The position numbers and the translations under genes were made by a program. Below, one piece after another: positions 2,300-27,887 of a DNA stretch of 64,000 bases (positions within the stretch are counted from its first letter, which is position 1; each line of letters begins with the position of its first letter). The DNA lies in contig OZ076411.1 in NCBI GenBank assembly GCA_964187785.1, positions 54,312,001-54,376,000 on the forward strand, read 5' to 3'. Source of the stretch: Amphiscolops sp. MND2022. Its lineage: Eukaryota. The notes under the pieces were generated by a model that did no database searches, was not told the DNA's origin, and worked only from the letters and a program-made list of their open reading frames with translations.

Positions 2300-2796
2300 G
2301 CTTTCGGAAGCACTCGATTCTTTAAGATAGAGCGAATTCCACTGATTGCCGGAGGTGGATGTCGTCTCTGGTAGTATTTTTTTCGCCGCTGTAGATGCTT
2401 CGGGACATAACTCTGAAGAGCCACAGGCGATCGTTGCTGCATTTAAGGAGTCGATTTAATGCCTTGGCTTGGTAAAGGGATGTTTAGCCGGGAGGAACCG
2501 CGATAACGAAGGTTCTGAGTGCAACTTCAGAGGCTGCTACAGCAAGGCCGGAGATGTCCCTGGCAAGAGTTTGAGTGTTCCAGGTTTGTAAGTCGTTGCT
2601 TCCGACGAAGAGCACGATCAGATCGTACCGACCTTTTGCAGGTAAGGAGGGTATCACGTCTTCAACTTGTACACCTGGTAGGACGAGGATATTGAAGTTA
2701 GGGAATGTCAGGTTCCTTGTGAATCCGTGATAATTAGGGTACGAGTGGACGAGTTCTTGAAGAGGTGATAACGCATGAGGAATTATTAAAAAGAAT
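2300..2796 (-). pseudogene. Degenerate SGNH/GDSL hydrolase-like ORF inside the LTR element
   Basis: YDLIVLFVGSNDL (block III GxND) in the copy-2 ORF 7794-8168. After a frameshift the sequence continues to RDDIHL (block V DxxH). The block I region is degenerate (FLIIPHAL). Confidence 0.7.
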
Positions 2797-2942
2797 TGTC
2801 GTGAGGGAAAACACTACTTGCAGGAAGCTTCTTTTTGATAAGCATTCATCTGAAGCATACATGCAACAATTAGGCTGAAATAAATAAAACAACGACTTTA
2901 TATACCACTATTAATAACTACGTATATATTACATTCTTAACA
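2797..2942 (-). repeat. 5' LTR of Gypsy element copy 1
   Basis: tgtcgtgagggaaaac...tacattcttaaca; no canonical PBS adjacent. Confidence 0.85.
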
Positions 2943-3886
2943 GTTATGCATGAAGCAATCAAATTTGTTTAATCACACGTGATAAATTTATCAAAAATTT
3001 CTATTCATTAAGTTTGTCACAACACTATATATATGCATAGTGAAAAATGTCAACCTTTTTTGCTCAAGAGGTTTCCATCAACCCACTTGTTCGAAGGTCA
3101 TGTAGAATTGCTGAAAGAGTTTTAGCGAGTTGTCCCGTTGGTTTTATTAAGTGAAACTACTGTTTGCTACTTAAGTTTTAAGTTCCTTTTAAGTTCCTCC
3201 AGGAGTAGCCCTATATTCACCAGTTTCGTTTCTAGTGGATACTTGTTAAGTTAGGTTAGGAGAGAGAAAAAGACTTACATCTCTTTCGAGACCAATTTAT
3301 TACCACACGCTTTTGCTATATTTGCATACCTTACAAGTACAACAAATTGAGAAGGAACGCACATAATCCGTTTGAAAATTTTTAGACAACAAAAAATTTT
3401 CTAAAATTTTCATGTTTTCATTGTCGAAGCCACCGATGATATTGTGACGGAAAAGATAATTGACCATTTTGGCAGCTCTTATGAAGAAAGTTTTTTGATG
3501 TGATAAGGTTGAGTATCCACAGTACAGTGTTAGTATAGTACAGTGTTAGTACAGTATTGTGTTAGTTTCATTGTGTCAGTCATTCTCACTCTAGGAAATT
3601 GCTTACTCAAGGCGAATTCGATTCTGCTGGAGTCTCGAATTTCCGTGTGGTTTTTGATTTTGGTGATAAAGAACGAGTTTTGCGGTGACCATTTCGTCAG
3701 TTGTCTTGGGGTTGGCTCAGGCCTTGCAATCACTTTTGCGGCGTAGCTTTCATGTTGTTTGCTGCAGTTGTTTCGTCTTCTGACGATGGTTTATTTTGGG
3801 GTTCAGATCTCAAGTAAATTCCTCTATGGATTCCTTCATTTGAAGGATCACACTTTTCAGAGTCTTTTGGTCACATCTGTCCAGAA

Positions 3887-4832: not shown

Positions 4833-5693
4833 CTACAGAATATTGAGGACTTTCATGTTTTTAAGTGAAACTCCCGACATGAAACAGTTTGCATGGAACC
4901 AACTGCCACATGTGTCACATTCTATTCCATCAAATACGTTAACAGAACACCTTTTGCAGTGTACTTTTTTCACATTACTTTTTGTCATGTTCGATTGCTG
5001 TTCAACACAGGTCTCCGCTTACCTGAAAAAAGAGACACTTAAAAAACTAGTCACTACAACCACGGTAGCTAAACCAGGTCGCTGTTATTAGTCTCAAAAG
5101 TCACTCGGTTGTTCTTTTCTTCGAGCTTCTCTCCCCCTGACAGCCTATTATTGGGGTGTCATTGTTGTGTAAGCTTTTTCAAGTTCCTCAGATTATTATG
5201 GGAAATAATTCGAAATGTTCCGAGTTCAACGTTGCCCCTCAAATGGAAATTGGAATCGACTACAATGGTGGGTAGCCGTCTTTTTCTTTTCGGCAAAAGA
5301 TCGCTGGCTACATTGATCACGAATATTCCAGATTTTTGCAGCTGTGGATAGATCTGGTCAGATCTGTTTACTCTTTGGCAGTAAACAATAGCTGCAATTC
5401 TGTTCTGATATTCTGAAGGACCTGAAGGAGTTCCTCTAACGACAGAGGCTTGTTGTTGGTACTAGTGTGCTCGGAAAATGAATTACTAATAACGTCGTTC
5501 CAGATCAAATTTTCTCGATGTGGCAGGAAGTTCGATAATTTGACGTTGAACTGATTTCGGGTGTTCACTGAATGAGGGTTGAGGCTCTGGCCTGGTATTG
5601 CACGAGAACACGTCGCGATAGCTGCCGCTGTTGTTGTTTGTGTAGGGTTTTCAGGGCGTGATAGAGGGAGCTTGCGCCGAGGATGAAGATTAT

Positions 5694-8252
5694 TGTCGTG
5701 AGGGAAAACACTACTTGCAGGATGTTTCTATTTGATACGCATTGATCTGAAGCATACATACAACATTTGGGCTGACATAAATAACACAACGACATTATAT
5801 ACCAGTATTAATAACTACGTTTATATTACATTCATAACACTCCTTCCCGCTTCTGAAGTCTCTAGTTCGTCGCCAACACAAAATCGCCCAGGTATGAAGG
5901 CGGTTTCCTGTTCCTTGCCCAAAGTCGCAATGGGGGAGCAGGAGAGTCCGGACTGGTTTGAGATTTCTTTACTGGTTTCACAGATTCAGGTGGCTCACAC
6001 TGGGTTTCGATGTGGGAGTCAACGTTAGTCTCCTTGTCTCTGCACTGATTGCCTGGTTGCGAGGTCGTTCCTTCGTTGTCCACATCCGGCGGTCGTCGAG
6101 AGAGGTCCCTGGTAGAAACCCTGTCAACTCGCCCATCGCCAAAGGAGACTGGTGCAAGGTGAAAGAGGTTTTTCTCGGATATCTGTAGAGGCACAAATGG
6201 AGCTTGGTCTTTTGCCCTTACAAATTTCGGAGGAAAGCGAGTGTGTCTGCCTTGAGCCAAGGTAGAAGGACGGATCAGCGGCTCACCGCGTTTGAAACAA
6301 AAGAAGCGGCCATGCGGACTCTCTTTGGTGACTGTATTGATGAGTGTCCGGATCGACGAGAGCGTTGATGGTAGGACATTTTTCCAGTCAGAGAGTGGGC
6401 GGTTAGCGGAGTGTAACAGGCACTGAACGGCATTCCACACAATTCCGTTGTAGCGTTCGTTTTGGCCATTGTCTTGAGGATAGTAGGGCGTAGTTTTGGA
6501 GGTCGCGGAGGTTTTGGCGGCGGAAGTTTTGGGATTCCGATGACACGAACTGTGTGCCCCGGTGGGAGTGAATGAGCCCACGGGTTCCGAAGATGGTAAA
6601 AAGTGTCGAAAGACATTTGATGATGCTACTAGACGTGATGTTCCGGAGAGGGAAGGCGAACATAAACCTACTAAGCTTATCCACCACTGAGGGAAGGTAT
6701 TGGTTTTTGCTTCGAGTCATTGGTTTAGGGCCAACAATGTCGATTGATGGTCGCTCCCAAGGTTTGGAGGACTGGATAAGATCGCTGCTGGGCAGCCGCA
6801 AATGTGCGGTTTCTGAGAAAACGGCTGCTTAGCCGCAGCTATAGTTGAAGATTCAGCGCTGCGAAAAGTTTCGAAAAGTCACTGGATAGTTTGACTGTAC
6901 ATGCAAGCAATATGCAACTATCGATGTCGGCCTTGGAGTCTTAAAGCTCCAATTGTCTTGCCCGAATGTCATCAGACCTGAACCCTGATATTAAAGCGTC
7001 TCGTACCAGATAATCTTTATGTGCTTGGACGGTCAGACTGGTGCTTTCGCAGTTTTCAACAAGTTGTTTCAGCCTCCAGAAAACTGTACGATGGATTCGT
7101 TGTTCTTTTGACTGGCACTGAGCATTTGATGACGGGCAAAGAGCACTCTTGTGGGCTTCACAATCTGCCTGTCCATTGTTCTCAGTGAGTCTGCAAACGT
7201 TGCAGAACTTTCGAGGAGTGTGAAATAGTCGGAGCCGACAAAAGTACGAAGGAAAACTAATTTGTCAGCATCTTCGGTGGTGCCATTGACACGTAAACCT
7301 TCCTTGAAACATTTTCCCCCTCTTCCACTTCTCGGGAGACGGATTTGGTGGCAAGTCGATTGGTTTGAACTTCATGAGAGACTGAAGAAAGAATACAGCG
7401 CATAGACAATGGCTCCGAGGAACTCAAGAAAGTATTGTAGTAGCAGAAAGGTCAACAGCTACGAGGAACCTAAGAAAGTACTGTAGTAGCAAAATAGTGA
7501 AGTCACTTACCTGGAAGACAGTTTGAGTGACTTAGCGCTGACAAATGCAATGACCACAACAACACTGGTTTGTTTGAGGGTGACCTCGTTTGTGGATCTG
7601 GAGGCAGAAGGCTTTCGGAAGCACTCGATTCTTTAAGATAGCGCGAATTCCACTGATTGCCGGAGGTGGATGTCGTCTCTGGTAGTATTTTTTTCGCCGC
7701 TGTAGATGCTTCGGGACATAACTCTGAAGAGCCACAGGCGATCGTTGCCGCATTTAAGGAGTCGATTTAATGCCTTGGCTTGGTCAGGGATGTTTAGCCG
7801 GGAGGAACCGCGATAACGAAGGTTCTGAGTGCAACTTCAGAGGCTGCTACAGCAAGGCCGGAGATGTCCCTGGCAAGAGTTTGAGTGTTGCCGGTTTGTA
7901 AGTCGTTGCTTCCGACGAAGAGCACGATCAGATCGTACCGACCTTTTGCAGGTAAGGAGGGTCTCACGTCTTCAACTTGTACACCTGGTAGGACGAGGAT
8001 ATTGAAGTAAGGGAATGTCAGGTTCCTTGTGAATCCGTGATAATTAGGGTACGAGTGGACGAGTTTTTGAAGAGGTGATAACGCATGAGGAATTATTAAA
8101 AAGAATTGTCGTGAGGGAAAACACAACTTGCAGGAAGCTTCTTTTTGATAAGCATTCATCTGAAGCATACATGCAACAATTAGGCTGAAATAAATAAAAC
8201 AACGACATTATATACCACTATTAATAACTACGTATATATTACATTCTTAAGA
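5694..8252 (-). mobile_element. Gypsy-type LTR element with SGNH ORF, copy 2
   Basis: Duplicate of 383-2942; LTRs at 5694-5839 and 8107-8252 (terminal CA mutated to GA); same frameshifts as copy 1. Confidence 0.88.
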
Positions 8253-8704
8253 GTTATGCATGAAGCAATCAAATTTGTTTAATCACACGTGATAAATTTA
8301 TCAAAAATTTCTATTCATTAAGTTTGTCACAACACTATATATATGCATAGTGAAAAATGTCAACCTTTTTTGCTCAAGAGGTTTCCATCAACCCACTTGT
8401 TCGAAGGTCATGTAGAATTGCTGAAAGAGTTTTAGCGAGTTGTCCCGTTGGTTTTATTAGGTGAAACTACTGTTTGCTACTTAAGTTTTAAGTTCCTTTT
8501 AAGTTCCTCCAGGAGTAGCCCTATATTCACCAATTTCGTTTCTAGTGGATACTTGTTAAGTTAGGTTAAGAGAGAGAAAAAGACTTACTTCTCTTTCGAG
8601 ACCAAATTATTACCACACGCTTTTGCTATATTTGCATACATTACAAGTACAACAAATTGAGAAGGAACGCACATAATCCGTTTGAAAATTTTTAGACAAC
8701 AAAA

Positions 8705-11700
8705 TTTTTTTTTTCAATTTTCATGTTTTCATTGTCGAAGCCACCGATGATATTGTGACGGAAAAGATAATTGACCATTTCGGCAGCTCTTATGAAGAAA
8801 GTTTTTTGATGTGATAAGGTTGAGTATCCACAGTACAGCACACTGGTTACTCCAGTCCTCATTTCTCGAAGATTTTTTTCGGAAACGAATGTACGTTGAA
8901 CAATCATAATTATAGCGCCCATTAATTAAATTAGTCAGCATAACGAATGTCAAACGCTCTATATGGTGACAAAGTGGCAAAACTTGATTGATTTTAAGTT
9001 GAACTTAATAGCTCTGTTGATGGCCAAAAACCCAACGGAAACAAGGTTTTTGAAACGCTCCATTTCTTTCAATCTTGTGATGTCGGGAAACCAACCCGGA
9101 ATACAATATATAAGGATGCAGAGCACCACTGCCCGATACAGGTTTAATTTTGTTTTGTACGCGAAAGGGTATTGAAGGGGATTCTTGGTTTCATAGCATA
9201 AAACGCTCTTCTCGTTTTGTTAAGTTGAATTTCAACATGACTGACCCATTTAAGATCATTCGAAATATTCAAATCCGAACCTTTATGTAATTTCACATTC
9301 TCCAACGCTTAAGTAGATCCTAAAAACACAATCGGTTGACCTTTAATTGCCAAGCAACAATCGGATCATTCTCGAGGAACCATTTCAATTTTTACGTGTG
9401 GGATGCGATCACCAATTTAGCTTCGAAGTAGATCAACAAGATCACTTTCCAAACCAAATCTAAAGAGCTTAGACAAAAGAATTAAATGAGAAACTTTGTC
9501 AAATGCTTCTTCATAATCCACGTGAATAGGGAACGTGCAGTAAGTTTTATGGCGATGGATATTTTCAATAAAAAATATCAACTGGAGTACTGAGATTTTT
9601 CGACTGAAACTCAAACTGCTGGGGATGAAACTGTATGTAATGTTTTGTACAGGAAAGAAAACATTATTCATTCGAAGATTAGGAATACTTTTGGTAACAA
9701 CCTAATGGGACGGTAGTTACTGAGTATATTCCCCGGATCTCTTTTGTGTACTGGACGAACATATGCCACATTCCAAACGTCAGGATAGACACGCGTGAAC
9801 AAGACAAAAGCAAATAAAGGATAGAAGAGGTTCGCTGGAACTTCCGGACACAATTTCAATGTTTTGGCGGTAAGCAATTGGCTTTTGTAATTGAGGAATC
9901 TTTCAGCTCTAAAATCAGCTTTCGTATTGTGACAGTCTTTAACGAATTCAGTATGTCAGCCAACTCCACAGAATTGTAGTTTTCGAAAGACAAACATTGA
10001 AGGCATTTGCTATTTGCTTACCCCCAGAATAGGAATATATATTCTGTTTCATGACTGTGGTAGGATGTTGTTCAGGATGTTCAGCAAACGAAAGCAATCA
10101 GTGAGAAAATTCATTCGCTCTCCACCAATGAACAATAGGCGATCCTGTTCAGCAGAGGTGTCGAAATCATGCTGTAGACTTTCGACGTTTTTAAATTTAT
10201 TTTTAGTAGAATTTTTCACATGCTTTCTTTTTGCAGTGTTCATTTTATTTAGGCAAAGGACTGTATGAGACGAGTAATAGAAAGGATTACCAGGGCGTTT
10301 TTCTTTTTTCTCCAGAAAGACGATGCAATATTTGTCCAGAGAAATTTGTTGAATTCGTTTACATTGACAGGAGAAAGACAAGAACTGAAAGCAAAATGAG
10401 ACCAGTTGTTTTTTTTAAAAAATAGTGATTCAAGAGGCTTAGATATTGCGAATTCAAAAGAATTTGATCTAGGGCAAGGATATTCACCAACTTTGAAATT
10501 TATGAGATATTGATCACTCAAAATGTCTTGTTTCGTTATTTGTAATGAGATAGGATAACTATGGTCACTACAGAGAATCTTGTCGAGGGTATTTCCATCA
10601 CAATGAGTACTTTCAGCAAAAATTAGAGGTCGTAAGCCCCAGTTGGAAAAGAGCTGTAGATAATCTTTTTCTCTGATGCAATTACTATACATTAGATGCC
10701 AATAAGCATTCGGAAGTTTAAAATTGCCTAGAACATATAATGAAAGACAGTAAACACTCAAGGGATACTTTTGTTCCATGGAACGAGTAGCTGTTTAAAA
10801 GTAGGGTTGCCATACACTCTACAGACACTTCGTGCGGACTAGGATATGGCAAAGAAACAAGTATGATTAGAGCCATCGTTTTTTCACTGAGGCAAAGAGC
10901 TATAGCAACAGCAAAATCGAAGTCATCGAGGTCAATTTCATTAGCTAAAAAACTGCAAGTAGTGCGAAAAAGAATGGCTACACCGCCACGAGGACCCTTA
11001 ACTCTATCTTTTCTTGCAACAGGTTTAAAGCATCCAACCTGCGTATATTGTGCATAATCCTTCCACCAAGTTTCGGTAAGGAACAGAACATTTATCATTT
11101 CAGAGTTAAAGAATTCTAAGAGTTGGCATTGTTTGGTTTTGGAGTCGAGGTCTTGAACATTTTTGAGTAGGTTGTTCGCGTTGACATGAAGTCATTTAGA
11201 ATTTTCATCTGCCAGTTTAATTGATTCTAGGTGTGATCGGATATCAGCAAAGGAGCAAGTGTCATCTATTTTATCGCCGTTAAAAAGTAGGTTCAGATCT
11301 CGGATTCTGAAGAAATTCCTATCAAACCCTTCCTGAATGAAGTCAAATTTTAGTTTCAGAAGTGATTTTTCTCTTTGTCTGTCAGTCCATTTAAGTTTCG
11401 TTTTGACGAAATAAGTAGTTCGTTTCAAAAAGTGAACATTTGCCAATAGCAGTCGCTTATCATGTTCACAGTCGAATTGTCAAGATGTGCCATTAGCCTC
11501 GCAAGACGGGAAGGATCCAATGGTGAGCCACGAACCCTATGGTTCAAGTACCTGCCAGATGACATCGCAAACACACAACTTTTGATACTGCACATTCATG
11601 TACCTGTTTGTGCGATACAACAGACAATTCTTGATACCGCACAATTTTTGTTCACTTGCAGGTACTTTTCGCGGTGCTATATGTACCCGATGCTGAACCA

Positions 11701-14700
11701 CTTCTACCATGAATTGCAATTGTAAATACATCAACCAAGTCTGATCATAAGCAATCAATCTCAATTCGGTTCTTCATTCCTACCCAACCTGTTTTAAAAT
11801 GTTGTGGGCCTAGCAGCTTCCCAGACGATGCCATCTACGTAACAAGAGTATGACTTCCCCACTTTTCTGGAGCAGTTCGAAGCAAGAGTCAATGCCCAAG
11901 GATTTTCTGACTGCCTTTTGGACAAAATCAAAGCAAAACCTCAAAAAGACGTGGAGACGAATGGCGAACGTGTCAAGCGAGAGAGGGAAGAAGCAGATCT
12001 AGCCAAACTCCAGTACAAGGTGAAGCGCGAGCTGGTTCAGTGCCTTAACAAGGCAAAAATCATTTTCATCAGAGGGCACAACCCGAATGGGACTGCAGCC
12101 TGGACAGATTTGACGAAGCTCCACAAAGTAACTGAACGGCCTCGTGTTCAGTCATTGATGACACAGCTTACTGTTCTCAAGGTGACATCAGGGGAGAAGG
12201 TGACTGACTACCTCACCAAAGCAGAAGGGTTCTAACTGGATCTGGTTGAAGCGGGGGAAGTGGTTTCTCAAGGTCTTCCAAGTGACTTCGAGAGTGTGAT
12301 GGCAGTCCTCAATTCCGTCACAGCAAAGGGGTACTACGAGATGAAGCAGGGCTTGGACAACTTCGCAGCAACAGGGGTCTCAGTGTTTCCAGCGAGACAT
12401 CGATGACAGCCCTTCACTCAGCCGGGAGGAAGCTTCCAACGTGCTTGAAGTGTGGAAAAATGGGTTACCGAGCTGAAGACTGCCACAGTCGGGAGACGAG
12501 GACTTGCTTCAACTGTGGTCAGAGGGGGCATCTCACTTCATCTTGCAGGAAGTGACAGCAAAGAAGCTCAAGTGGAGGATGTGGCTCGGGTCAATCCAGC
12601 AACCATTCATCAGCGGACTTCTTCAGCTTCGGGGCTTTCAGGGTTGGTTGCTACGACAAGAGGAGCATTGAGCTTCTCATTGGCTTTGGAAGCATCGGCT
12701 TCATGATCAAGAACAAGGAACTCTTCTCCGATCTGGACGAGGGATTTCTGGCAGACGTATGCAACGCTAACAGCAGTCGTTCAGAGATCAGAGGACGCGG
12801 GACAGAACGATGCTTTGTGAAGGACAATACAGGCAGTTCTTGTCTACTGGAACTGAGGCATGCCTTCTGGATGCCATCCTACGCGAGGAATCTGATGTCA
12901 GTCAAGCGATTGACGTACAAGGGGGCATTGATCCAGTTCAAAGACGACCCCCAACCATCAAGATGCCCAATGGAACTGTTGTGCCAATGATGACAAATGA
13001 CAAACTTTTCAGTGTGATGGCTGAACTTGTGGAGACGGGGTCACTGGCAATGATGTCTCACACTATCAAGCACTGGCATCGAGTGATGGGGCACAACAAC
13101 TGGTACGATGTGGCAAAGTTGCAGCACGAGGTTGTGGGCATGAACATCTCTGGCTCCGAAAAGAAGACGAACTGCAACATCTGCTGCACCGAGTAGGCGA
13201 AGCGGGCATCCATTCCGAAGACCTGGGGCACTCGAGCGAAAACGAAACTGGCTATCGTTCACCCAGACGTTCTCGGACTCATTCAGCAGGAGACCCACGA
13301 GGGTTTTCGCTATGCAGTGGGCTTCATCGACAATTATAGCAATTTCGGGGCAGTATTCCCAATGAAGTCAAAGGATGAGGTCACAGCAAAACTACAACGA
13401 TTCTTCATCGATTTTGGCAGGCCTGGCACCTCGATCTCAGACGGGGATCTCGTGTTCAAGTCAAAGCAGTTCAGTGACTTGTGCACCTCCAATGGCATCA
13501 AACAGAAGTTCTCTGCTCCCTACATACCCGGGGAAAACGGCAAAATTGAGCGAGCATGGAGGGATCCCAAAGCAGTTCTGGCCTTTTGCTCTTACAAGTT
13601 CCATCTACCTGAAGAATCGATCAATCCACTGGGCGCATGGCAAGACCCTTTTGAGATGCTTCACGGAAGCAAGCCTGACCTTTCACATCTTCACGTGTTT
13701 GAGTGCCAGTCGTTTGTGCTCAACGAAGTCAGGAAGAAGCTGGACAGCAATGCACGGGAAGCTATTCTACTGGGATACTCGGTAAATTCTAAGGCATATG
13801 TGGTGGCCTCAACAGACGGGTCAGAGGCAAGGGCACGAAAGGTCTGTGTATCACCAAACGTCAACTTCAACGACGATGCATTTCCTCACCAACGTGGTTT
13901 TGTAGTCACCCAAGAGGAGAGCGAGGACGATGATGCATCTCAATGGGATATTGTTGATCTGAAATTGGGGTCAGATGAAGAATGCGAGGCCACTTCTACG
14001 AAAACCCATGCAATCCAGGGCCAATCAGAAGTTACCATCAATCCAGATGAAGGGACACTCAATGTACAGACAGTAGAATAGCAGTGCAGCAAATGACAAC
14101 CAGGTGTTCGGATAGGACTCGAAGGGCGCCTCAACCTTTCGGCGGCTATGTGACAGGGAGACATGCACTTCACTGTGATGCTTTGACTTCAAGCGGCCTT
14201 CCAAGCAATACAGCAGACGCCCTTGCGGATCCCAACTGGAAAGCAGCGATGGACAGAGAGTTCAAATCACTGGAAGAAAATGGTGTCTGGGAGTTAGTCA
14301 AGCCACCAGCAGAAAAAGGCATTTTGCTCACAAACTAGACGACGAAGGAAACGTGGTTAAGTACAAGACACGATTCGTGGCACGGGGGTTCACGCAGACG
14401 CCAGGCATTGATTTTCACGACACCTGCTCACCAAGCTTTCTGCACTCAGAACTGTCCTGGCATATGGGTTGAAGCTGTGTATGCATTTCAATCAGATGGA
14501 CATAAAGACAGCCTACTTGATTGCACCAACTCAAAAAGACATCTACATGGTGCAGCCAGAGGGGTATCAAAAGGGTAAACAGATGGTGTGCAAGCTTAAA
14601 TGGTCATTTTATGGACAGAAGCAGTCGGGGCGCAATTGGTTTGAGTGTCTCTCTTCTCATCTCTTTGAGCGTCAATTTTAAGGCATCAGTTCACGATCAT

Positions 14701-16625: not shown

Positions 16626-18590
16626 TTGACAAGTCTTCCACTTTATATTTGAGTCCTCTTACATTCCAGGTGGCTATTTTGAAGGTCTGTTTTAGGTTCT
16701 GACTTAGGTCATCACACCGCTCATCCATCGAAGACCTGAGTCTCAAAAATTTTGAAACAAACAGAAAGACCAAACAACAATCTGATGGTCATAAATATGT
16801 ATGCACCGTGCATGGGATTAGTGGACAAGGATGAATCTCAAGGCAGAAATGTTTTATATCCACCTAAATGAAGCCTTCAAGAGATTCAGAGGCATGGACT
16901 GCATGATAACTGGAGACTTCAACGCCAAGCCTGACAAGCAAGCCAGTACTGAAGCCATAGGTGCGCATGCACGAGACAACAGGAACAAAAACGGCGAATA
17001 TCTCCTACATTTTCTATGCGAAAACAAACTTATGCCTCAAACAGCATTTTCAAGCATAATGCGTGTCATATAACAACATGGGAAGGATGGATTAACAACA
17101 GAAAAGTCAATAATCAGATAAATTTCATCCTTCTGAGATTCTCAAGAAAGCATTCGATTTTAAAGGCGAGATCGTTTATTGTGTTCAGTGTATAAACTGA
17201 TCACAGACTGGCTTTAACGACCCTCAGAAGAGCAAATGATTTCGAAAGAAACAAAACACAGAAGATCAGCGCAAGGTCAGAAAATAAAGTATTATCAACT
17301 TCGCGGTCAAAGAAACATAACATTATAGAGAAAATGTCGCAGTGTAAAGATGGGGAAAAGTTGAAAGATCTGATTAGGTAGAAAGCCAGAATCACAAATT
17401 GCATCAAAAGAAGAACTGGATATCTGGAAACGGACACCATGCTTGATGAAGCGAAGGAGATCATGAGAACAAAAGACAACGCGCAATCCTCACTTGTCAT
17501 CAAAAAAGTCCTGAAAAAGAGAAAAAAGAGAGTGAAAGAACACAAAGCAATTGAAAAACGGACAAAGCACTTCAGTGAACAGTTCTATTGTGAACGGTGC
17601 CAGTCGATAAGTGCAGGCCAACCAACGTCAGTAGAAAGTTCAGAGGTTGCCAAAGCAGTTGTCAAACTGGAATCGGGAAAGCTCCTGGGTCGGATGATCT
17701 TACGGCCGAAGAACTGAAGGAAATGGATCTACAACTGATAGAATGCAAACTGAATGAGTTCATCAACAAGAAGAAAGACAAAACTCTGACAGAGGGGTAT
17801 CAAATACCAATTGATAAACCGGGCAAGGATGCTACGAAACCAGAGAACTACAGACCAGTAACGCTGCTATCAGTCTGGAAGAAGCTACTCTCAGAGATCG
17901 TACTCCAAAGAATTAATCCCATCAGTGAGCAATCGTTATCCAACACGCAAGTTGCATATAGACAAAATCGATCCACTGGCGACGTAGTACTTGGGCACAA
18001 ATACATGCTAGCCGGTACTATGGGCAAAGTGTTTAACAAATATTGTGTCGGCATAGACATGTCTAAGGCTTTCGATAATGTCATCCGAAGCAAACTGATT
18101 CATATACTGAGAACCAGAGGTGTTGAAGACAAAGAACTAGATCTGATCCAGCTGCTGTTCTCAAACACTACACTCCAGATAAAAAGACGAAAACAGAAAG
18201 GAAGCTGTTTCGAAACCAATAAAAGCGTATTCCAAGGGGACGGACTGTCGCCAAGGCTGTTCACTGTTTACATGGACGAAGCGCTTAGAGAAATAGATCA
18301 GTATCTCACTTCCGATCACAGCTATGCAGCCGAAGGAACGTTGTGCCACACGGACAGGATTATCAAAACCACACCGCCCCCAGTATCCCAAAACACTTGG
18401 AATTTGCAGATGATGTGGACTTTCTCTGCGAATCCGAAGAGCAGGCTGAAAGTGTCGTCAAAATAGCAAAAAGTCCTAGACGAGCTGAATTTGCAAGTAA
18501 ACGACACAAAAACAGATTTTCCAATACCACAGAGACACAGACCTCAGGAAAATCAAAAAATCAGGAAACATTCTCGACGAAGGAGCTGAC
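16625..18590 (+). mobile_element. Degenerate RTE-like LINE with an inverted 5' segment
   Basis: Plus strand: LMVINMYAP, MITGDFNAK, RNKNGEYLL; RT ENYRPVTLLS, GIDMSKAFD, FQGDGLSPRLF, LEFADDVDFL. The N-terminal FKIATWNVRGL lies on the minus strand (16625-16773). Confidence 0.85.
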
Positions 18591-19040
18591 TGCTGAAAAG
18601 TGAATTCCAATTCCGAGCTCTTGGAATTGACTCAATACTCAATTGCAATTCCACCAGATACTCAATTTTCAATTCCACTAAAACTCAATTAATTGAAATC
18701 TTCGCTTGATTTATGTTTTCGTTCAAAAACATCTTTGACTTCATCAACTTTAGAGTTAATTGTTAAGAAGAGAACTTGAATTAACTAAGTTGAGTAAAAA
18801 TCCAACTAGATCCTGTATGGAATATCAGACACAAAGTCGCATTCAAGCAATATAATGATATATCTGTATGATGAAAATACGGTTCGATTTCTGGATAGAT
18901 TTAAGCTGGAGAACGTCTCCGGGTCTTGTGCAGGTGCCCACAATTATTAATTGCAATAAAAATAACATTTAAAATCTCAAAAAACAATTATTTGAAAATT
19001 AGACACTTCATGGAACAATTATTGCAATAATTGGCAAAAA

Positions 19041-19388
19041 TTGGCAAATGAAAACATCAGTTGTCAAAGCATAAATTCAGACAAAATTGATAAAAATCTG
19101 CCCAAAAATAAGGAACCCAAAGATTCATTCAGTAGCGTTGACGACTTCGTTGACCGGATTCAGGTCCCACAGTCTCTTGTTCGACATCAGAAACAGCTGT
19201 TTGCTCTTTGCTTCCCAGAATCATCCGACATTGTCGCATATATTAATTTGAATAAATTTCAAAACGATTCCTCAAAAAAGTGGAAAAAATTATTGAATTC
19301 GTTTGCAGACCACGAGTTGTTCAATTTGAAACAACATCAAGTGAAATATTTTGGAAGAAATGTGTTTTTGTACTTTGTATATTTATAA
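19041..19388 (+). other. Small unknown ORF in repeat A (copies at 21374-21688 and 23708-24019)
   Basis: 103-115 codons open in all three copies, with an in-frame 3-nt deletion in copy 3. TTG start only; no recognisable domain. Confidence 0.35.
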
Positions 19389-19409
19389 AGCTTGAAAGCG
19401 CTCTTCACC

Positions 19410-20238
19410 TTATGATAACCTGGACCGTCTTTTCTCACTACTTCTTCCCCGCGAACCCGGCTGTCTTATCGCACGCCTCACTCCTTGAGGCTGATATTGC
19501 GCACCCAGGCGCTGAATTCGCTCTTCCTCGGCCTCCTCGACCTTCAGTGTGGTGATCATCAAAGCTGCTGGCCCTGGTCCTGTCAATACACAGTGTGCGG
19601 TCAAGGAGGAAAACAGGACCACATCACCGGGCTCCTGGATGCAGTACGCTATATGTTCCCGGAATTGCAGCAAGTCATCCCGGAGCGTACTAGGCAGGGA
19701 ACGAAGCCTTTCCAACGAAGGCACGATGCGTTGAATGCAGAGGGTCTTCACCTCGCGTGTGCGAGTGGTGAAGGACCACAACTTTCTCCCCCTTTTCAGC
19801 TGGCTGACAATACTTCCTCCCGGGTTGGAGTCTATGTGCCAACCACTCCATGCCCAATCACCACTTGCAAGGAGTGAGACGTGCTCGATGGAGTGCCCGC
19901 CAATACCTTGGACAACCTCCACATACTGCTCTCCTAGCGGGTCCGGGTATAGGGCCTCATATCGCCAGGGAGCCTCTGGAAGACCATCGAAAGCAGCGTC
20001 CTTCATCCGTGTGCCCTTGAAGGTTGCCAGAAGCTAAGCTGCTTCTCACTACGGAAACAAACAGCAACCCTCCTCGCTGATCCGTTGGTGTAACGCAGCA
20101 CCGGATTGCCACGTATAATAATGGGGATGTTCTGTTTCCTCAAGAAATCCGTTATGCCCCCTCCCTCACCCGAGTCAAAGGAAGCCTCCCCGACTCTAAC
20201 TCCAATGTCAGGCTTAATGCAGCCTCAAGCTCATTCAT
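19410..20238 (-). pseudogene. JmjC-domain ORF copy 1, frameshifted
   Basis: Same JmjC motifs as copy 2. ATG at 20238, but a 5-bp duplication (aagct aagct, 20031-20040) breaks the frame. Confidence 0.85.
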
Positions 20239-20339
20239 CTCTAAAATAGCAAACTTGAATCTTTCTTCTTGTATATTTGTGGTTGGAATTGTGATTTATA
20301 ACTTTTAGTTGAAAACGAATTTTTGAGTTCATACAAGCT

Positions 20340-20681
20340 GGTTGGGCCGAAGTAGGTCGAAGGAACGGGATCAAAAATCAGAGTTAGTCCTCAGGTCGAC
20401 ATATCAAATTTTTGAATGGGATCGAAACAACTCGGATAGAAATTTTTATAACGTAGTCAGATATGTTCACATACCCCTAGTGCCCTGAATGCAGGAGCGA
20501 AGCGAAGCGGTGCCATATGGCCATGCCTCAATGTTGCTACTTGGCGAAGGGAGCGAAGCGACTGAGCCATACAACAAATACGATAAAATTCGACCGGATT
20601 CCATTCGATCCCTGCCATTCGATCAAAAGGTTCGACCTCTGTCCTTTCGACCAGAAAAATTCGACCTATTTACAGCCATCC
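20340..20681. mobile_element. MULE-like MITE (second copy 22669-23015)
   Basis: GG...CC ends with imperfect TIRs (ggttgggccgaagtaggtcgaa vs ggatggctgtaaataggtcgaa), 9-bp TSD atacaagct, internal inverted TCGACC repeats. Confidence 0.7.
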
Positions 20682-21742
20682 ATACAAGCTCACTGTGACA
20701 ACGCGCTGAATGCTATCTTTGTTTGATTGACCTTTCCCAACCCCATTCATTCTCATTCCTTTTGCTGAATACATGTTTTACGTTGCCTATTTGTTGTATA
20801 GACCGAATTGACCGAGGTGTTTTGCCAATGCATACAACATCTTTGTTAGCCAATAAGCTTGCAGTTACATAACTCCAATTGCATCATACTCTGTCATTTG
20901 TGAACTGTCTTGAACTGCAAAAACATGCAAAACGCAATAATCTTTTGATTTAATAAAGCTTTAAAACTTCAACTCAGTTTTGTTCGAGACTCTTCAGCAG
21001 AAATCATAATCTTACTTCCTGATAGTGGTCAGGTGGTCCGCCATTCAAGAACCAAGGGCGAGACTACTTCGCAAGCTACAAACGAAGTATTCTCGCAAAC
21101 AACAGAGGGACATCGGCGCGAACAGACATTGTCAACATGAAACTATTTATTAAGTTTATCACAAGAATTAGGCTTGAGCAGGGAAAAGTCGAAACGAAAT
21201 TCTAGATAAATAGATTGTAAGTGAATATCCTCGAATGTGGGCATGTCACGACCAAGTTTGTTTCGAGGTCATTGTTAGGCGAGTTGTATACGCCAAACAT
21301 AGTACGATTATTGAGAATACGAATTAACCGGATGATGTTACTTTGAAACATATATTGCAATGATTGGCATTAATTGGCAAATGAAAACATCAGTTGTCGA
21401 TGCATAAATTCAGACAAAATTGATGAATGTTTGCCCGAAAATAATGAACCCAAAGAGTCATTCAGTAGCGTTGACGACTTTGTTGACGAGACTCAGGTCC
21501 CACAGTCTCTTGTTCGACATCAGAAACAGCTGTTTGCTCTTTGTTTCCCAGAATCATCCGACATTGTCGCATATATTAATTTGAATAAATTTCAAAATGA
21601 TTCCTCAAAAAAGTGGAAAAATTTATTGAATTCGTTTGCAGACCACGAGTTGTTCAATTTGAAACAACATCAAATGAAATATTTTTGAAGAAATGTGTTT
21701 TTGTACTTTGTATATTTATAAAGCTTGAAAGCGCTCTTCACC

Positions 21743-22534
21743 TTATGATAACCTGGACCGTCTTTTCTCCCTACTTCTTCCCCGCGAACCCGGCTGTCTT
21801 ATCGCACGCCTCACTCCTTGAGGCTGATATTGCGCACCCAGGCGCTGAATTCGCTCTTCCTCGGCCTCCTCGACCTTCAGTGTGGTGATCATCAAAGCTG
21901 CTGGCCCTGGTCCCGTCAATACACAGTGTGCGGTCAAGGAGGAAAACAGGACCACATCACCGGGCTCCTGGATGCAGTACGCTATATGTTCCCGGAATTG
22001 CAGCAAGTCATCCGGGAGCGTACTAGGCAGGGAATGAAGCCTTTCCAACGAAGGCACGATGCGTTGCATGCAGAGGGTCTTCACCTCGCGTGTGCGAGTG
22101 GTGAAGGACCACAACTTCCTCCCCCTTTCCAGCTGGCTGACAATGCTTCCTCCCGGGTTGGAGTCTATGTGCCAACCACTCCATGCCCAACCACCACTTG
22201 CAAGGAGTGAGACGTGCTCGATGGAGTGCCCGCCAATACCTTGGACAACCTCCACATACTGCTCTCCTAGCGGGTCCGGGTATAGGGCCTCATATCGCCA
22301 GGGAGCCTCTGGAAGACCATCGAAAGCAGCGTCCTTCACCCGTGTGCCCTTGAAGGTTGCCAGAAGCTGCTTCTCACTACGGAAACAAACAGCAACCCTC
22401 CTCGCTGATCCGTTGGTGTAACGCAGCACAGGATTGCCACGTATAATAATGGGGATGTTCTGTTCCCTCAAGAAATCCGTTATGCCCCCCTCCCTCACCC
22501 GAGTCAAAGGAAGCCTCCCCGACTCTAACTCCAA
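21743..22534 (-). CDS. Stand-alone JmjC Fe(II)/2-oxoglutarate dioxygenase-like ORF (263 aa), copy 2; start codon uncertain
   Basis: SGWHIDSNPGGS (HxD), GRKLW (2OG-binding Lys), CIQEPGDVVLFSSLTAHCVLT (distal His). Intronless. No in-frame ATG near the 5' end (the ATG of copy 1 reads ATT here). Confidence 0.72.
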   Translation of the reverse strand: MELESGRLPLTRVREGGITDFLREQNIPIIIRGNPVLRYTNGSARRVAVCFRSEKQLLATFKGTRVKDAAFDGLPEAPWRYEALYPDPLGEQYVEVVQGIGGHSIEHVSLLASGGWAWSGWHIDSNPGGSIVSQLERGRKLWSFTTRTREVKTLCMQRIVPSLERLHSLPSTLPDDLLQFREHIAYCIQEPGDVVLFSSLTAHCVLTGPGPAALMITTLKVEEAEEERIQRLGAQYQPQGVRRAIRQPGSRGRSREKRRSRLS

Positions 22535-24208
22535 TGTCAGGGTTAATGCAGCCTCAAGCTCATTAATCTCTAAAATAGCAAACTTTACTCTTTCTTCATG
22601 TATATTTGTGGTTGAAATTGTGATTTATAACTTTTAGTTGAAAACGAAATTTTGAGTTCATACAAGCTGGTTGGGCCGAAGTAGGTCGAAGGCACGGGAT
22701 CGAAAATCAGAGTTAGTCCTCAGGTCGACATATCAACTTTTTGAATGGGATCGAAACAACTCGGATAGAAATTTTAATAACGTAGTCAGATATGTTCACA
22801 TACCCGTAGTGCCCTGAATGCAGGAGCGAAGCGAAGCGAAGCGGTGCCATATGGCCATGCCTCAATGTTGCTACTTGGCGAATGGAGCGAAGCGACCGAG
22901 CCATACAATAAATACGATAAAATTCGACCGCATTCCATTCGATCCCTGCCATTCGATCAAAAGGTTCGACCTCTGTCCTTTCGACCAGAAAAATTCGACC
23001 TATTTACAGCCATCCATACAAGCTCACTGTGACAACGCGCTGAATGCTATCTTTGTTTGATTGACCTTTCCCAACCCCATTCATTCCCGTTGCTTCTGCT
23101 GAATACATGTTTCACGTTGCCTATTTGTTGTATAGACCGAATTGAACAAGGTGTTTTGCCAATGCATACAACATATTTGTTAGCCAATAAGCGTGCAGTT
23201 ACATAACTCCAATTGCATCATACTGTGTCATTTGTGAACTGTCTTGAACTGCAAAAACATGCAAAACGCAATAATCTTTTAGTTTAATAAAGCTTTAAAA
23301 CTTCAACTCAGTTTTGTTCGAGTCTCTTCAGCAGAAATCATGATCTTACTTCCTGATAGTGGTCAGGTGGTCCGCCATTCAAGAACCAAGGGCGAGACTA
23401 CTTCGCAAGATACAAACGAAGCATTCTCGCAAACAACAGAGGGACATCGGCGCGAACAGACATTGTCAACATGAAACTATTTATTAAGTTTATCACAAGA
23501 ATTAGGCTTGAGCAGGGAAAAGTCGAAACGAAATTCTAGAAAAATAGATTGTAAGTGAATATCCTCGAATGTGGGCATGTCACGACCAAGTTTGTTTCGA
23601 GGTCATTGTTAGGCGAGTTGTATACGCCAAACATAGTACGATTAATGAGAATACGAATTAACCGGATGATGTTACTTTGAAACAATTATTGCAATGGTTG
23701 GCATTAATTGGCAAATGAAAACAGTTGTCAATGCATAAATTCAGACAAAATTGATGAAAGTTTGCCCGAAATTAATGAACCCAAAGAGTCATTCAGTAGC
23801 GTTGACGACTTTGTTGACGAGACTCAGGTCCCACAGTCTCTTGTTCGACATCAGAAACAGCTGTTTGCTCTTTGCTTCCCAGAATCATCCGACATTGTCG
23901 CATATATTAATTTGAATAACTTTCAAAATGATTCCCCAAAAAAGTGGAAAGATTTATCGAATTCGTTTGCAGCCCACGAGTTGTTCAATTTGAAACAACA
24001 TCAAGTGAAATATTCTTGAAGAAATATGTTTTTGTACTTTGTATATTTATAAAGCTTGAAAGCGCTCTTCACCTTATGTTACTTTGGTCGTCGCGAAATC
24101 GGGGCTCCAGATACATACGAATTGAAACGAAGATCCGAATTATCCCGATGCGAATTAACCGGAGTTAACTGCAACTATTTTTTGCATCGAATGAACGTTT
24201 CAGAAGTG

Positions 24209-25809
24209 ATGTGTTCTGGGGGTTTCATATTCGAGTACCAAGCAGTCATTCTGGCTGGCGGGAAAGGTAATAAAATTAGAGATTTGGCTGATCATTGCCC
24301 CAAGTGTTTACTTCCAGTGGCTAACAAACCACTGCTGTTTTACCCCTTAAATTTAACTTTGTCTTTCGGCTTCAGTGAAATTGTTGTAATTGTCCAAGAC
24401 TCCGAGCATCGTCAGGTAGAAGATTACATTCGACAAGAGTTTCCCAATTGGAAGTCTTCAGGTATCAAATTGGTAGAAGTAAGTCCGAATGATGACCTTG
24501 GTTCCTTGGAAGTAATTGTTGACCATAGAAAAAGCATTCTTTCGGATAGCTGCCGTGATCTTTTTGTTTTATCGTGCGATGTTATCACTGATGTTAATTT
24601 ACAAAACTTCGCTAATATTCACCGTGGGAGTGATTCAATATTGACATGCGTACTCGCTGACGGATCCGCTAAAATAGGAAAACTGCAGAGTGTTGGACCC
24701 AAGCGGAAACACAAGAGAAATATTGGTGATGTTGTTGGAGTTGAAACAGAAGGTAATCGATTAGTACTCTATCACCCTCTGGAAAACGTAGAAGAGAAAA
24801 TCACTGTTCCTAGTCTTGCATCAGCGGAAGGAATCTTCCAAATACTTCCCAAAACTTTAGACCCTCACATATACATTTTGTCTAGAGAAATTGTTGATTT
24901 CATCGCTGACCAACCCAAACTCCGAGAGAATATAACTCGAATCAAGTCCGAATTGATACCTTACCTAGTGAAACGAAGCATTCTCAAAAAAGTGGACAAA
25001 ACTGCAATCAGGGGACAATCAGACGGAGACCAAAAGGTGAGACTGTTTGGATTCTCTAATATATCCGGTATTATATGAAACAGTAATTTTTTCATTATTT
25101 CACACCATAGTCGCGATTTTTTTCAGTTCAAATATTCAAATATTTTCCTGTAGTTGCAATATGCAAACATTCAATAAAGTAGCCACTTTCTCGATACTCA
25201 TTTGAGTCGATTGCGAACTTTTTGAATACAGTTTTTTGTCATTTCGAAACAGTAAGTGTATAAGAAGCAAGTCGAAAAAAATCACTGTTTGATGTTCAGG
25301 ATGTGATGTCTCGACCAGTCAGATATCTCATGTCAACTGAAGACCAGTTTGTGTGGCGAGCGGATTCCTTAATCAATTATTTCGAAGCTAACAAGGCTGT
25401 TACCGAATCCATAATAGCGAATAGCACTTTCTCTAATGCCACCTTTTCCTCTTGCAAGGTGAAACCCAAAAGAGTAGCCTCTAATATTGTTGGAGAGAAC
25501 ACCTGTTTTGCTGATAAATCTGACGACGCCGCGACGGGTAAAGGAGGTAGGAAAAAGTTGACCATTGAAAAGTCCGTTTTTGGTAATAATTGCACGGTGG
25601 GGAAATCAGCTGTCATCAGCAATTGTGTCATTTTTGATAATGTGAAAATCGGAGATGGCTGCAAATTGACAAACTGTGTGCTGGCTTCATCCTGTACCAT
25701 CGGAGACAATTGTGATCTTTCCAGTGTCGTGGTAGCTGCGAAGGAAGACGTCGCTTCCAAAACAAAATTGTCAAACGAAACGATCAAACAAACTGCTAAT
25801 TTTCAATGA
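24209..25809 (+). CDS. EIF2B3: Translation initiation factor eIF-2B subunit gamma; exons 24209-25036 and 25300-25809 (~445 aa)
   Basis: EYQAVILAGGKG...PKCLLPVANKPLLFYPL nucleotidyltransferase-like N-terminus and C-terminal hexapeptide beta-helix (SVFGNNCTVG...CVIFDNVKIGDGC). Phase-0 GT-AG intron 25037-25299. The start could alternatively be the ATG at 24191. Confidence 0.9.
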
Positions 25810-26290: not shown

Positions 26291-27887
26291 ATGGGCTTCT
26301 CAGGGTTCCGAGGTTCTTCCTGGGACCCGAAGCTGCTCATCTCGCAGATGGTGAGTCTACAGAGCATCTACTACAGCACTCTGGGTCTACTGGTGTATTG
26401 CACGTGCCTGCTCTTCCCGAACCACGGCCTCACTCTGCAGCACATCCTTTCATACGACTCTATCAGCGTGTCCTCCCCCTCCGGACGCATCAACGCCAGT
26501 CTCTTCGTCATTAATTCCTTTATCATGTCTGTCGCTATTTGGCAGCTAGTTGGTAAGATACTCTATTCTACCTTCATTTATATGCCACGTTTTATCGAAT
26601 CATGGTTGTCTTTCTTCAACAAGAACCTTTTAATGCCCTACGGCAGTTCATTTCGCATACTGCATTCAATGCAAGTCTTGTTTGACCCCAGAAATGGTTT
26701 TTAGAATGATATTTTGATTACGTTTTTGTATTTATTAATATAATAACAGGAAATTGCCAATGACTTAAAAGGCGTCTAAAGCCTGATATAAACTCTCCAC
26801 TTTTCGTTACAGATTGTTTTTTTCAACTCTGAGAATTTTTTTTTCAGTTTTCGAATTGGCCAAAGGAAACTCGCTTTTGAACTAGGTAGAGCTAGTGTTT
26901 TCTAGGTAGAAGTAAATTATGCACAGACTTCTCGTGCACTCTGGTGTTCTACCATTGGCTGCTTTCGTGGCTTCTGCCCTCTCAGTACTGTGGCTTCCCC
27001 TCTGGCTGGATGTGGTATACTCTGCATGGCGTGTGTGCCCTCATGACCACAGTGCTCGCCGAGTATCTCTGCATCCGAACGGAGCTCAAGGCCAGTGGTG
27101 TCCACGTCGATCATTACATTAAACGAATTCATCATTTTTCTAGCAATCGGTAGAATTCTTGTCCTCATATTGGTTGAAAAAAATTTCTTTCGGAAAATGT
27201 TGCACAGTGCCGAAAAATGTAAAAGGGGGGACACTTTTTGATTTATAAACACGCATTCTGTAGCAAAATAACAAAAAACTCAAAGGGGGGACCCTTTGGG
27301 GACATTAAAAAAATTTCGAAAAAAAGTCTCAGCGCCGAAAAAAAATCGAAAGGGGGGGGGGACTTTAGTCCCGTCCGGGCTTGTATGTAACGTTTAAAAA
27401 GTAAATGAATGCGCTCCCCGTTTGCCTTTAGCGGTCCAGTAGTTTAGTACTTATTTAGTAGTTGAACGTTAATTTTAACGTTCGTCACTTCGAGTCTGTC
27501 TTAAATAAAAAAAAACGAGTGACTGTAATAGTCGGGCTCTTTTCTTAAGAAAAGCGCCGACTAAAAACGGATTGGTGCCGAGATTTTCAAGAATTCAGTA
27601 AAAGAACGGTAGAACTTTGAAAGATTGATCAATTTTTGAACCGTTTGAAACTGGTTCTGAGACTGTGGGGAAATCTTGGTAAAAATGCATTGATCTCATT
27701 TTTCCTTCGATTTTTTTTCAAACCTATGTTAGACCATTAGTTGAAGCTAGATCAAAGTTGGACATCACTGCTCCAGGCTGTGCCAATCTCCAATTCGGTA
27801 TCTACGTCACAAACGTCCACCAACTCCACTCGGGCTGCGGGGACATCTTCCTGTTCTTCTCAGAATGTCGGCGAAAGCGAAGTTTAA
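26291..27887 (+). CDS. SYS1: Golgi trafficking protein SYS1; exons 26291-26552, 26906-27090 and probably 27777-27887
   Basis: FRGSSWDPKLLISQMVSLQSIYY, GRSKLCTDFSCTL, LAEYLCIRTELK-AVPI match SYS1 family motifs. Intron 1 is GT-AG; intron 2 requires a GC donor. Confidence 0.88.
27190..27567 (-). mobile_element. Helentron-associated (HINE/DINE-1-like) non-autonomous repeat, partial copy in SYS1 intron 2
   Basis: Shares gggggacccttt and tgccgaaaaa modules, and the terminal tagtcgggctcttttcttaagaaaagcgccgactaaaaa hairpin, with the copies at 32.5-38.2 kb. Confidence 0.6.

Follow-up and report, generated by a model that had tools for sequence, protein, structure and literature searches.

Introduction

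Protein-coding ORFs can be housed within an LTR, as sag is in mouse mammary tumor virus (review PMC9147501). LTR retrotransposons seldom fix extra genes, and when they do, the gene usually reveals how element and host are in conflict. A Ty3/Gypsy lineage of Phalaenopsis has fixed an ORF for an AlkB-type 2OG oxygenase, which is proposed to counter host surveillance (PMC9289625), and fungal DNA transposons carry TET/JBP dioxygenase genes (PMC12730594). Among host proteins, the JmjC protein Epe1 of fission yeast is an anti-silencing factor that opposes H3K9-methyl heterochromatin (PMC7192584, PMC6576747).

Here we describe a locus that probably represents a tandem-duplicated BEL/Pao solo LTR from a family whose LTRs carry an antisense JmjC gene, the product of which is a putative anti-silencing nuclear oxygenase. 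The gene is LTR-housed like sag, a comparison made by description only; however, sag has the sense orientation, belongs to a vertebrate retrovirus and shares neither fold nor role with the JmjC ORF, which is antisense. The Phalaenopsis case shares the fixation of an extra 2OG/Fe(II) oxygenase gene in an LTR retrotransposon lineage, but it involves a plant Gypsy element and an AlkB-type RNA demethylase, in place of a BEL/Pao element with a JmjC-type gene antisense inside the LTR (PMC9289625). The fungal case likewise presents a mark-erasing 2OG oxygenase as transposon cargo that expands with its element, although the carriers are DNA transposons and the enzyme oxidises DNA bases and belongs to another 2OG family (PMC12730594). 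Epe1 is a JmjC protein in the role that we infer for the LTR gene, but it is a large host protein whose action is partly non-catalytic, and the two are compared by their shared domain only (PMC7192584, PMC6576747). Our literature search turned up no earlier description of a JmjC gene embedded in an LTR, and searches of NCBI and UniRef returned no member of the LTR JmjC family.

Results

The window, by which we mean the whole 64-kb stretch of DNA analysed here, is free of any N. Blastn of the repeat unit against the window delimits a tandem array whose units are 95-96.5% identical overall. The two full units and partial third described in the initial annotation are recovered by this search. The parts of the array are as follows, with L001 and L002 denoting related loci on other contigs.

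19011..24081, no strand: tandem array, 2.17 copies of a 2.33-kb unit
19011-21341: unit 1, 96.5% identical to unit 2 over 2.33 kb
21344-23675: unit 2
23678-24081: unit 3, partial, ~95% identical (95.3% by blastn of the unit against the window)
19232..21124, + strand (element sense): BEL/Pao solo LTR copy 1, with a MITE copy of 342 bp nested in it; identity to the L001 LTR 93%
21565..23458, + strand: solo LTR copy 2, 1894 bp including a nested 347-bp MITE; 94% identical to the L001 and L002 LTRs
23896..24081, + strand: LTR copy 3, of which only the first 186 bp remain
23459..23895, no strand: non-LTR spacer between LTR copies, 436-437 bp, equivalent to 21125-21564
22669..23015, no strand: nested MITE-like insertion of 347 bp, with a 9-bp target-site duplication (TSD) and imperfect terminal inverted repeats

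The array unit consists of a solo BEL/Pao LTR and 436 bp of flank, which were copied jointly by local tandem duplication. LTR copy 2 has TGT...ACA ends and is bounded by a 5-bp TSD, GACAT, at 21560-21564 and 23459-23463; copy 1 also has TGT...ACA ends, and its flanks are the same as those of copy 2. Copy 3 is without a JmjC ORF because its break falls within a few bases of the expected JmjC stop codon. No gag-pol is present between the LTRs in the window, where the LTRs alone are left. We looked for a PBS and a PPT in the 436-bp spacer between the LTRs and found neither, and the spacer begins and ends with the target-site duplication; it is therefore flanking DNA and not the internal region of an element. 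On the same grounds we rejected an array of LTR-internal-LTR elements for the window, whereas true arrays of this kind are present in L002 and L004. A 44-bp piece of another repeat also lies within the spacer. The MITE-like insertion of unit 2 is located ~100 bp upstream of the JmjC start position and corresponds to an insertion at 20340-20681 in unit 1. Since units 1 and 2 share it, the insertion predates the tandem duplication. Its empty site is visible in L001, and further copies of the MITE occur in L001, L003 and L004.

Within and beside the array lie the following coding or formerly coding sequences.

21743..22567, - strand: JmjC-like gene copy 2, 274 codons plus stop when aligned to relatives
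19410..20238, - strand: JmjC-like gene copy 1, with two frameshifts and the start codon kept
21374..21688, + strand: the "small unknown ORF" of the initial annotation, also at 19041-19388 and 23708-24019, without an ATG start
24191..25809, + strand: eIF2B-gamma (EIF2B3) host gene, with candidate ATGs at 24191 and 24209

In JmjC copy 2, 263 codons are open (21743-22534, - strand) with no frameshift and no internal stop, and the Met codon at which its relatives initiate is gone. The aligned pieces of copy 1 are without internal stops, and a 198-aa ORF remnant persists. Both copies are decayed relics that are unable to make the full protein as they stand. The small ORF had been described as converging on the JmjC ORF within ~21 bp, a distance that holds for unit 1 (21 bp) but not for unit 2 (54 bp). 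Roughly 64 of its codons belong to the flank, and the first 124 bp of the LTR contribute a further 41 or so; Pfam yields no match for it, and its flank half is missing beside other LTR copies. The small ORF is thus a chimera across the LTR insertion junction and probably not a gene. The neighbouring gene, divergent from the JmjC ORF, is indeed EIF2B3. Its first coding ORF extends to 25078, and a second, with the LbH domain, lies at 25303-25809; searched separately and not joined, the two ORFs yielded human eIF2B-gamma as the best PDB match (1e-31) and the domains NTP_transferase and LbH_EIF2B. As had been noted, the array stops close to the EIF2B3 start, ending at 24081, which is 110-128 bp before the candidate ATGs.

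The initial annotation had offered a mobile cargo gene as one explanation of the JmjC ORF, and this is borne out on other contigs, where Pao gag-pol is bracketed by two copies of this LTR. Dispersed copies that are 88-93% identical sit inside Pao elements on many other contigs. The carrier is a BEL/Pao LTR retrotransposon with the gene inside its LTR, in place of the Helitron, Maverick or MULE that had been considered. In L001, 99.4%-identical 1.6-kb direct repeats surround Pao gag (DUF1759) and pol (Peptidase_A17, RT, integrase, DUF5641), both apparently complete, and each repeat contains a 274-aa ORF on the strand opposite to gag-pol. The element has TGT...ACA ends, a 5-bp TSD (GCGTT), a purine tract before the 3' LTR and a TGG-starting primer-site candidate after the 5' LTR; the purine run and the 17-nt TGG-starting candidate are common to L001, L002 and L010. 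L002 and L004 have the layout of L001, with LTRs that are 98.2% and 95.5% identical, respectively, and all three carry gag (DUF1759) and pol domains between the LTRs. Pao genes are also found in L010, a second lineage that comes from another sample and is laid out alike: its JmjC sequence is ~40% identical, its Pao polyprotein measures 1755 aa (pol 56%, gag 58% identical), and another JmjC begins at the contig end. Solo LTRs with a 5-bp TSD and an open ORF occur at L003 (GTCTT) and L005 (CGAGA), as well as in the window (GACAT).

The family LTR (~1.6 kb) holds a complete ~274-codon JmjC gene antisense to gag-pol. Because the gene is inside the LTR, a full element has two copies, and one is kept in each solo LTR. 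The ORF forms a 55% GC island within LTR flanks of 32-38% GC. Overall, the family amounts to 27 clusters and ~97 called sequences, which are spread over many contigs. The dN/dS ratio is 0.29-0.5 in comparisons of copies from young elements (0.29-0.37 between the youngest) and ~1 between old copies. The distant members L007, L008 and L009 (23-30% identical) are single copies with no Pao genes near them, and LTR carriage is therefore established only for part of the family.

From sequence profiles and structural modelling, the ORF is predicted to encode a stand-alone JmjC-fold 2OG/Fe(II) oxygenase whose C-terminal tail is basic and disordered. Against Pfam JmjC (PF02373), which has a gathering score of 24, the window ORF attains 22.0 bits (E 2.4e-4) and falls short; its relative P0051 reaches 29.4 bits, above the gathering score, and 11 of 13 close relatives have a match (E<0.1). 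Among solved proteins, the family profile finds ceKDM7A (2e-6), PHF8 (2.8e-6) and JMJD6 (1.7e-4), in agreement with the KDM7/JMJD6 likeness first seen in the motifs, and its HxD, 2OG-Lys and second His columns align with those of PHF8/KDM7. The HxD...H motif and 2OG Lys reported for the window ORF are conserved across an alignment of 21 sequences, down to 23% identity: H122 is invariant, W121 is invariant or nearly so, and D124, K140 and H203 are each at least 90% conserved. The basic C-terminal tail, likewise reported earlier, recurs in most full-length members of this alignment. An AlphaFold model, proposed in the initial annotation as a check, returned a JmjC fold (pLDDT 85, pTM 0.82), which together with the family profile bears out the description of a ~260-aa ORF that is essentially JmjC only. 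The best 50 matches of the model in the PDB are all JmjC/cupin oxygenases, the great majority JmjC (probability 1.0, E ~1e-7 to 1e-6); the best, at E ~1e-7 and moderate TM values of 0.44-0.54, are JMJD5, JMJD6, FIH, TYW5, JMJD7, PHF8 and KDM7. JmjC is the sole Pfam domain in 13 members, in which Pfam detects no reader or targeting domain (PHD, CXXC, Tudor, F-box/LRR). All 71 relatives are at most 321 aa long, making this a small family of ~230-320-aa proteins.

Two groups of known enzymes are closest. The KDM7/PHF8 (and KDM2) demethylases are the best profile matches, with aligned HxD, 2OG-Lys and distal His residues and a shared double-stranded beta-helix. In contrast to them, the LTR protein has only ~274 aa and is without a PHD, CXXC, F-box or other reader domain; it is ~10-14% identical to the solved structures, is not an orthologue, and has its gene in the LTR of a transposon, not at a host locus. 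The JmjC-only hydroxylases JMJD5/KDM8, JMJD6, JMJD7, FIH and TYW5 are the top structural matches and are similar in size and single-domain build. No sequence orthology to these hydroxylases was detectable, and the LTR family differs from them in its own N-terminal segment and basic tail.

Discussion

A gene with this placement could serve its element in the following way, where the promoter, poly(A) site and U3 are assigned from position only. The JmjC gene would lie in the U3 part of the LTR and would therefore be copied along with the element. It would probably be transcribed from integrated DNA, leftward and divergent from the element promoter region in the same LTR. The basic tail would probably take the protein into the nucleus, and the action of the enzyme may help the element to withstand silencing by the host. 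Its likeliest job, we tentatively propose, is to demethylate repressively methylated lysines, or to perform a related oxidation, on chromatin proteins found at copies of the element or close by. The more specific picture of an animal BEL/Pao lineage with its own LTR-encoded nuclear JmjC demethylase, divergently transcribed and erasing repressive histone methylation at its own copies, is possible but somewhat unlikely.

A role as a non-histone hydroxylase of the JMJD5/JMJD6/FIH kind is nearly as likely as the chromatin role. The LTR-borne protein would then have as its substrate a protein, or an RNA, of the host or of the element, whose modification would aid expression or replication of the element; chromatin marks would be left aside. 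We regard this as somewhat unlikely. The protein is without a reader domain (PHD, CXXC, Tudor) and has JmjC-only enzymes as its best structural matches, both of which argue for it, whereas the closest solved proteins by sequence profile are the KDM7/PHF8 lysine demethylases.

The many truncated or broken copies, together with a dN/dS near 1 among the older ones, would fit a host JmjC gene that was captured once by an LTR, gives the element no benefit and is slowly decaying; the distant relatives away from Pao genes could then represent the host source. Such a passenger is improbable, since the arrangement is kept in two lineages whose pol is only 56% identical, with the JmjC open and catalytic residues retained, and the low dN/dS between the youngest elements also speaks against it. 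Slightly less probable still is that the host has adopted solo-LTR copies as ordinary, fast-evolving chromatin or hydroxylase genes. Each solo LTR would offer a self-contained gene, and the solo LTRs of L003 and L005 have kept open ORFs, but conservation at a single locus across species is established for no copy, those in the window are decaying, and no annotated proteome contains a family member. Finally, the other explanation first offered, in which rolling or re-replication multiplied a lineage-specific host gene at this locus, would account for three head-to-tail units at a single locus but is highly improbable and was rejected, because the unit is a transposon LTR carrying its own 5-bp TSD plus 436 bp of flank, dispersed LTR copies with their own target-site duplications and the copies inside Pao elements lie on other contigs, and TE DNA is directly duplicated on the kb scale at two further places in the same window.

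The reading that we prefer is thus a tandem-duplicated BEL/Pao solo LTR with an antisense gene for a putative anti-silencing oxygenase. Annotated proteomes lack a family of stand-alone JmjC proteins, ~260-300 aa in length, whose existence is shown here. For genome annotation, this is a warning that such "orphan JmjC genes" and their adjoining small ORFs are LTR content and not host genes. If the proposed function is true, the enzyme would be the first JmjC anti-silencing factor known to be encoded by a retrotransposon, and every leftover solo LTR would be a self-contained gene copy. What is probably the genome of an animal would then contain a chromatin-mark eraser encoded by a mobile element, and the ability of a retrotransposon to actively undo heterochromatin would become testable by descriptive means.

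An LTR-borne JmjC gene in BEL/Pao elements

The initial annotation offered two readings of the JmjC ORF, a mobile cargo gene or an amplified host gene, and our data support the first: the ORF lies inside the long terminal repeats (LTRs) of BEL/Pao elements at four loci on other contigs, L001, L002, L004 and L010. A search for dispersed copies and their flanks, which the annotation had proposed as a check, returned 27 clusters by word search (~97 called sequences) on many contigs of one ENA assembly. Most of these clusters are 68-93% identical, and two are at ~51%.

In L001, two 1.6-kb direct repeats (99.4% identical) surround two Pao genes, a gag (DUF1759) and a pol of 1386 aa with Peptidase_A17, RT, integrase and DUF5641 domains. 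Each repeat carries a 274-aa ORF on the strand opposite gag-pol, giving two copies per element. The repeats begin with TGT and end with ACA. Ahead of the 3' repeat lies a purine tract, a TGG-starting candidate primer site follows the 5' repeat just before the gag ATG, and a 5-bp duplication, GCGTT, bounds the whole element. No tRNA for this primer-site candidate was found in the window or the loci. The 3' LTR is broken up by nested insertions; an element with PHD and RVT_1 domains is nested in it (L001:4667-7077), and a 44-bp end of that element recurs in the window's spacer at 23467-23510.

L002 and L004 share the L001 layout, with LTRs that are 98.2% and 95.5% identical, respectively. Both also contain LTR-internal-LTR-internal runs with common LTRs (L002:2850-15400, L004:2700-12500), in which another internal region, ending in its purine tract, comes before the right-hand LTR. 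Whole-element head-to-tail arrays seem common in this genome. Two further loci, L003 and L005, are solo LTRs bounded by the 5-bp duplications GTCTT and CGAGA, and both retain the ORF in open form. The flank of the L005 locus (L005:1-4630) consists of tandem 2.2-kb units (99.8% identical) whose ORFs have precomputed matches to Circo_capsid and RNA_helicase (Rep-like), and it resembles a circovirus-like sequence that has been integrated or concatenated.

The same arrangement occurs in L010, a contig from a different sample. Its JmjC ORF is 40% identical and accompanies a 1755-aa Pao polyprotein (pol 56% and gag 58% identical to L001), the purine tract and primer-site candidate are the same as in L001, and a second JmjC copy begins at the contig end, where only its opening codons are present. 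Since this layout is found despite only 56% pol identity, the arrangement has lasted through substantial element divergence. L006, a 1.45-kb Logan contig with a relative 45% identical, has an LTR-start-like motif ~100 bp past the stop codon and no detectable pol; its first 22 bases (L006:1-22) look like a sequencing-adapter remnant. We found no Pao genes and no LTR pair around the distant members in L007, L008 and L009 (23-30% identical); these members may belong to the host, represent the origin of the captured gene, or travel with other elements.

Organization of the tandem array

The repeat array described in the initial annotation is real, and the 64-kb window that holds it contains no N. 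Two full 2.33-kb units, 96.5% identical, are followed by a partial third copy that is 95% identical. The features of the array are:

19011-21341, array unit 1
21344-23675, array unit 2
23678-24081, partial third copy (404 bp)
19232-21124, LTR copy in unit 1
21565-23458, LTR copy in unit 2
23896-24081, third LTR copy, truncated
unit 1, minus strand, JmjC remnant with only 198 aa open
21743-22534, minus strand, JmjC ORF of unit 2 (21743-22567 as aligned over the 274 codons of its relatives)

Neither full JmjC copy is intact. Copy 1 keeps its start codon and has two frameshifts and zero internal stops; copy 2 is free of frameshifts and stops but lacks the initiator Met codon found in its relatives.

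The sequence GACAT stands on both sides of the second LTR copy. The 436 bp between LTR copies match no Pao interior and contain neither a primer site nor a purine tract, and are thus flanking DNA. The array unit is therefore a solo LTR together with its flank, duplicated in tandem; a reading of the array as elements with deleted interiors was rejected because the primer site and purine tract are missing. Both full units carry, at a shared position (22669-23015 and 20340-20681), a MITE-like element of 347 bp with a 9-bp duplication, which was therefore inserted before the tandem duplication. Elements of this type are ~350 bp long, with terminal inverted repeats that are imperfect and a 29-bp tandem repeat in the interior; others are found at L001:7248-7597, L003:11432-11777, L004:2951-3300 and L004:13484-13833, with insertion sites that differ across several LTR copies.

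The small ORF of unknown function that faces the JmjC gene was rejected as a partner gene. Its reading frame begins in the flank, crosses the insertion junction and takes in the first 124 bp of the LTR. It lacks an ATG and matches no family, and its flank half is not present beside other LTR copies; we take it for a chance chimera.

Two further kilobase-scale direct duplications of TE-rich DNA in the window indicate that local duplication of this kind of DNA is common here and not special to the JmjC gene. One spans 1-3527 and 5312-8838 (3.5 kb, 98.7% identical), and each copy carries a 239-aa ORF with no Pfam match. The other (49348-55393 and 57953-64000) is an 8605-bp unit repeated head to tail at 99.5% identity that continues past the window end. 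This unit has two ORFs, one of 432 aa with DUF1759 (Pao gag-like) and one with RVT_1, and is another Pao-like element in tandem, without a JmjC ORF. Other TE remnants around the array (12810-14081 and 17597-18466) include Copia-type integrase pieces (gag_pre-integrs, rve and SH3_retrovirus) and, immediately to the array's left, an ORF with RVT_1.

The gene to the right was correctly named EIF2B3, with the array ending 110-128 bp before its candidate ATGs. Its two ORFs were searched separately: the first coding ORF finds human eIF2B-gamma at 1e-31 and the second contains an LbH_EIF2B domain. The closest named eIF2B-gamma proteins are just 31-34% identical, so this is not a human contig. The third array copy ends within a few bases of the expected position of the JmjC stop codon, which implies a deletion after the duplication, next to the eIF2B-gamma promoter region. 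Directly upstream of the eIF2B-gamma start, 23896-24191 consists of the truncated third LTR plus flank in the gene's orientation; the upstream region of this housekeeping gene may thus be built from the array. Downstream lies an ordinary host gene, an ORF with the domain of the Golgi membrane protein SYS1 (26291-26704).

A divergent family with a predicted JmjC fold

The window ORF scores 22.0 bits against the Pfam JmjC model, under the 24-bit gathering score; 11 of its 13 close relatives match the model, and a distant relative clears the threshold at 29.4 bits. When 1.84 billion representatives were searched exhaustively with the profile, only 71 relatives came up, all from ENA assemblies or Logan contigs and none from NCBI or UniRef. 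Every one is at most 321 aa long, and multi-domain JmjC proteins are absent among them. A scan of JGI metagenomes found no relative, and neither phmmer nor the close-family profile A2 matched PDB sequences.

Across 21 aligned members, with identities as low as 23%, H122 never varies; conservation is 90% or more at W121, D124, P127, G138, K140, W142, Q189, H203 and V205, and most full-length members have a basic C-terminal tail. AlphaFold gave a pLDDT of 33 with the 13 close sequences only, and a good model once distant relatives were added (50 sequences; pLDDT 85, pTM 0.82, tail disordered). In this modeling check, which the annotation had suggested, JmjC oxygenases are the best PDB fold matches: JMJD5, JMJD6, FIH, TYW5, JMJD7, PHF8 and ceKDM7A lead the list (E ~1e-7, probability 1.0, TM 0.44-0.54, 10-14% identity). 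A viral fold library yielded only generic giant-virus and phage cupins. The family profile matches ceKDM7A and PHF8 at ~2e-6 and JMJD6 less strongly (1.7e-4); the columns for the metal and 2OG line up. The Pfam matches of the relatives, the conserved catalytic residues, the fold model and the KDM7/PHF8 profile match all uphold the original JmjC motif reading, and the protein is a predicted JmjC-fold oxygenase. It is not a member of the KDM2/KDM7/PHF8 group, because it has no reader domains.

Constraint and proposed role

When copies in young elements are compared, dN/dS is 0.29-0.5, and among older copies it is ~0.8-1.4, the pattern expected of a gene that is kept by an active lineage and decays after insertion. 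The ORF has a GC content of 55% and forms an island in LTR flanks at 32-38%.

Oxygenase cargo has been described in other transposable elements: orchid Gypsy elements carry an AlkB-type oxygenase ORF (PMC9289625) and fungal DNA transposons carry TET/JBP genes (PMC12730594). Both are parallels as cargo, whereas here the enzyme family and element class differ and, unlike either, the gene lies antisense inside the LTR. We found no report of a JmjC gene in an LTR or in retroelements in the limited literature searched, and the text of one candidate preprint makes no mention of JmjC.

The ORF appears to lie toward the upstream, U3 side of the LTR, a position from which it would be regenerated in every replication cycle. 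We propose that integrated DNA is the template for its transcription, which would run divergently to the element's own promoter region, and that its basic tail may act as a nuclear signal. The enzyme would oxidize a chromatin protein or another nuclear protein substrate to the benefit of the element. Removal of repressive lysine methylation is our leading, tentative guess for this job; close behind comes a JMJD5/6-like hydroxylase, which we consider somewhat unlikely.
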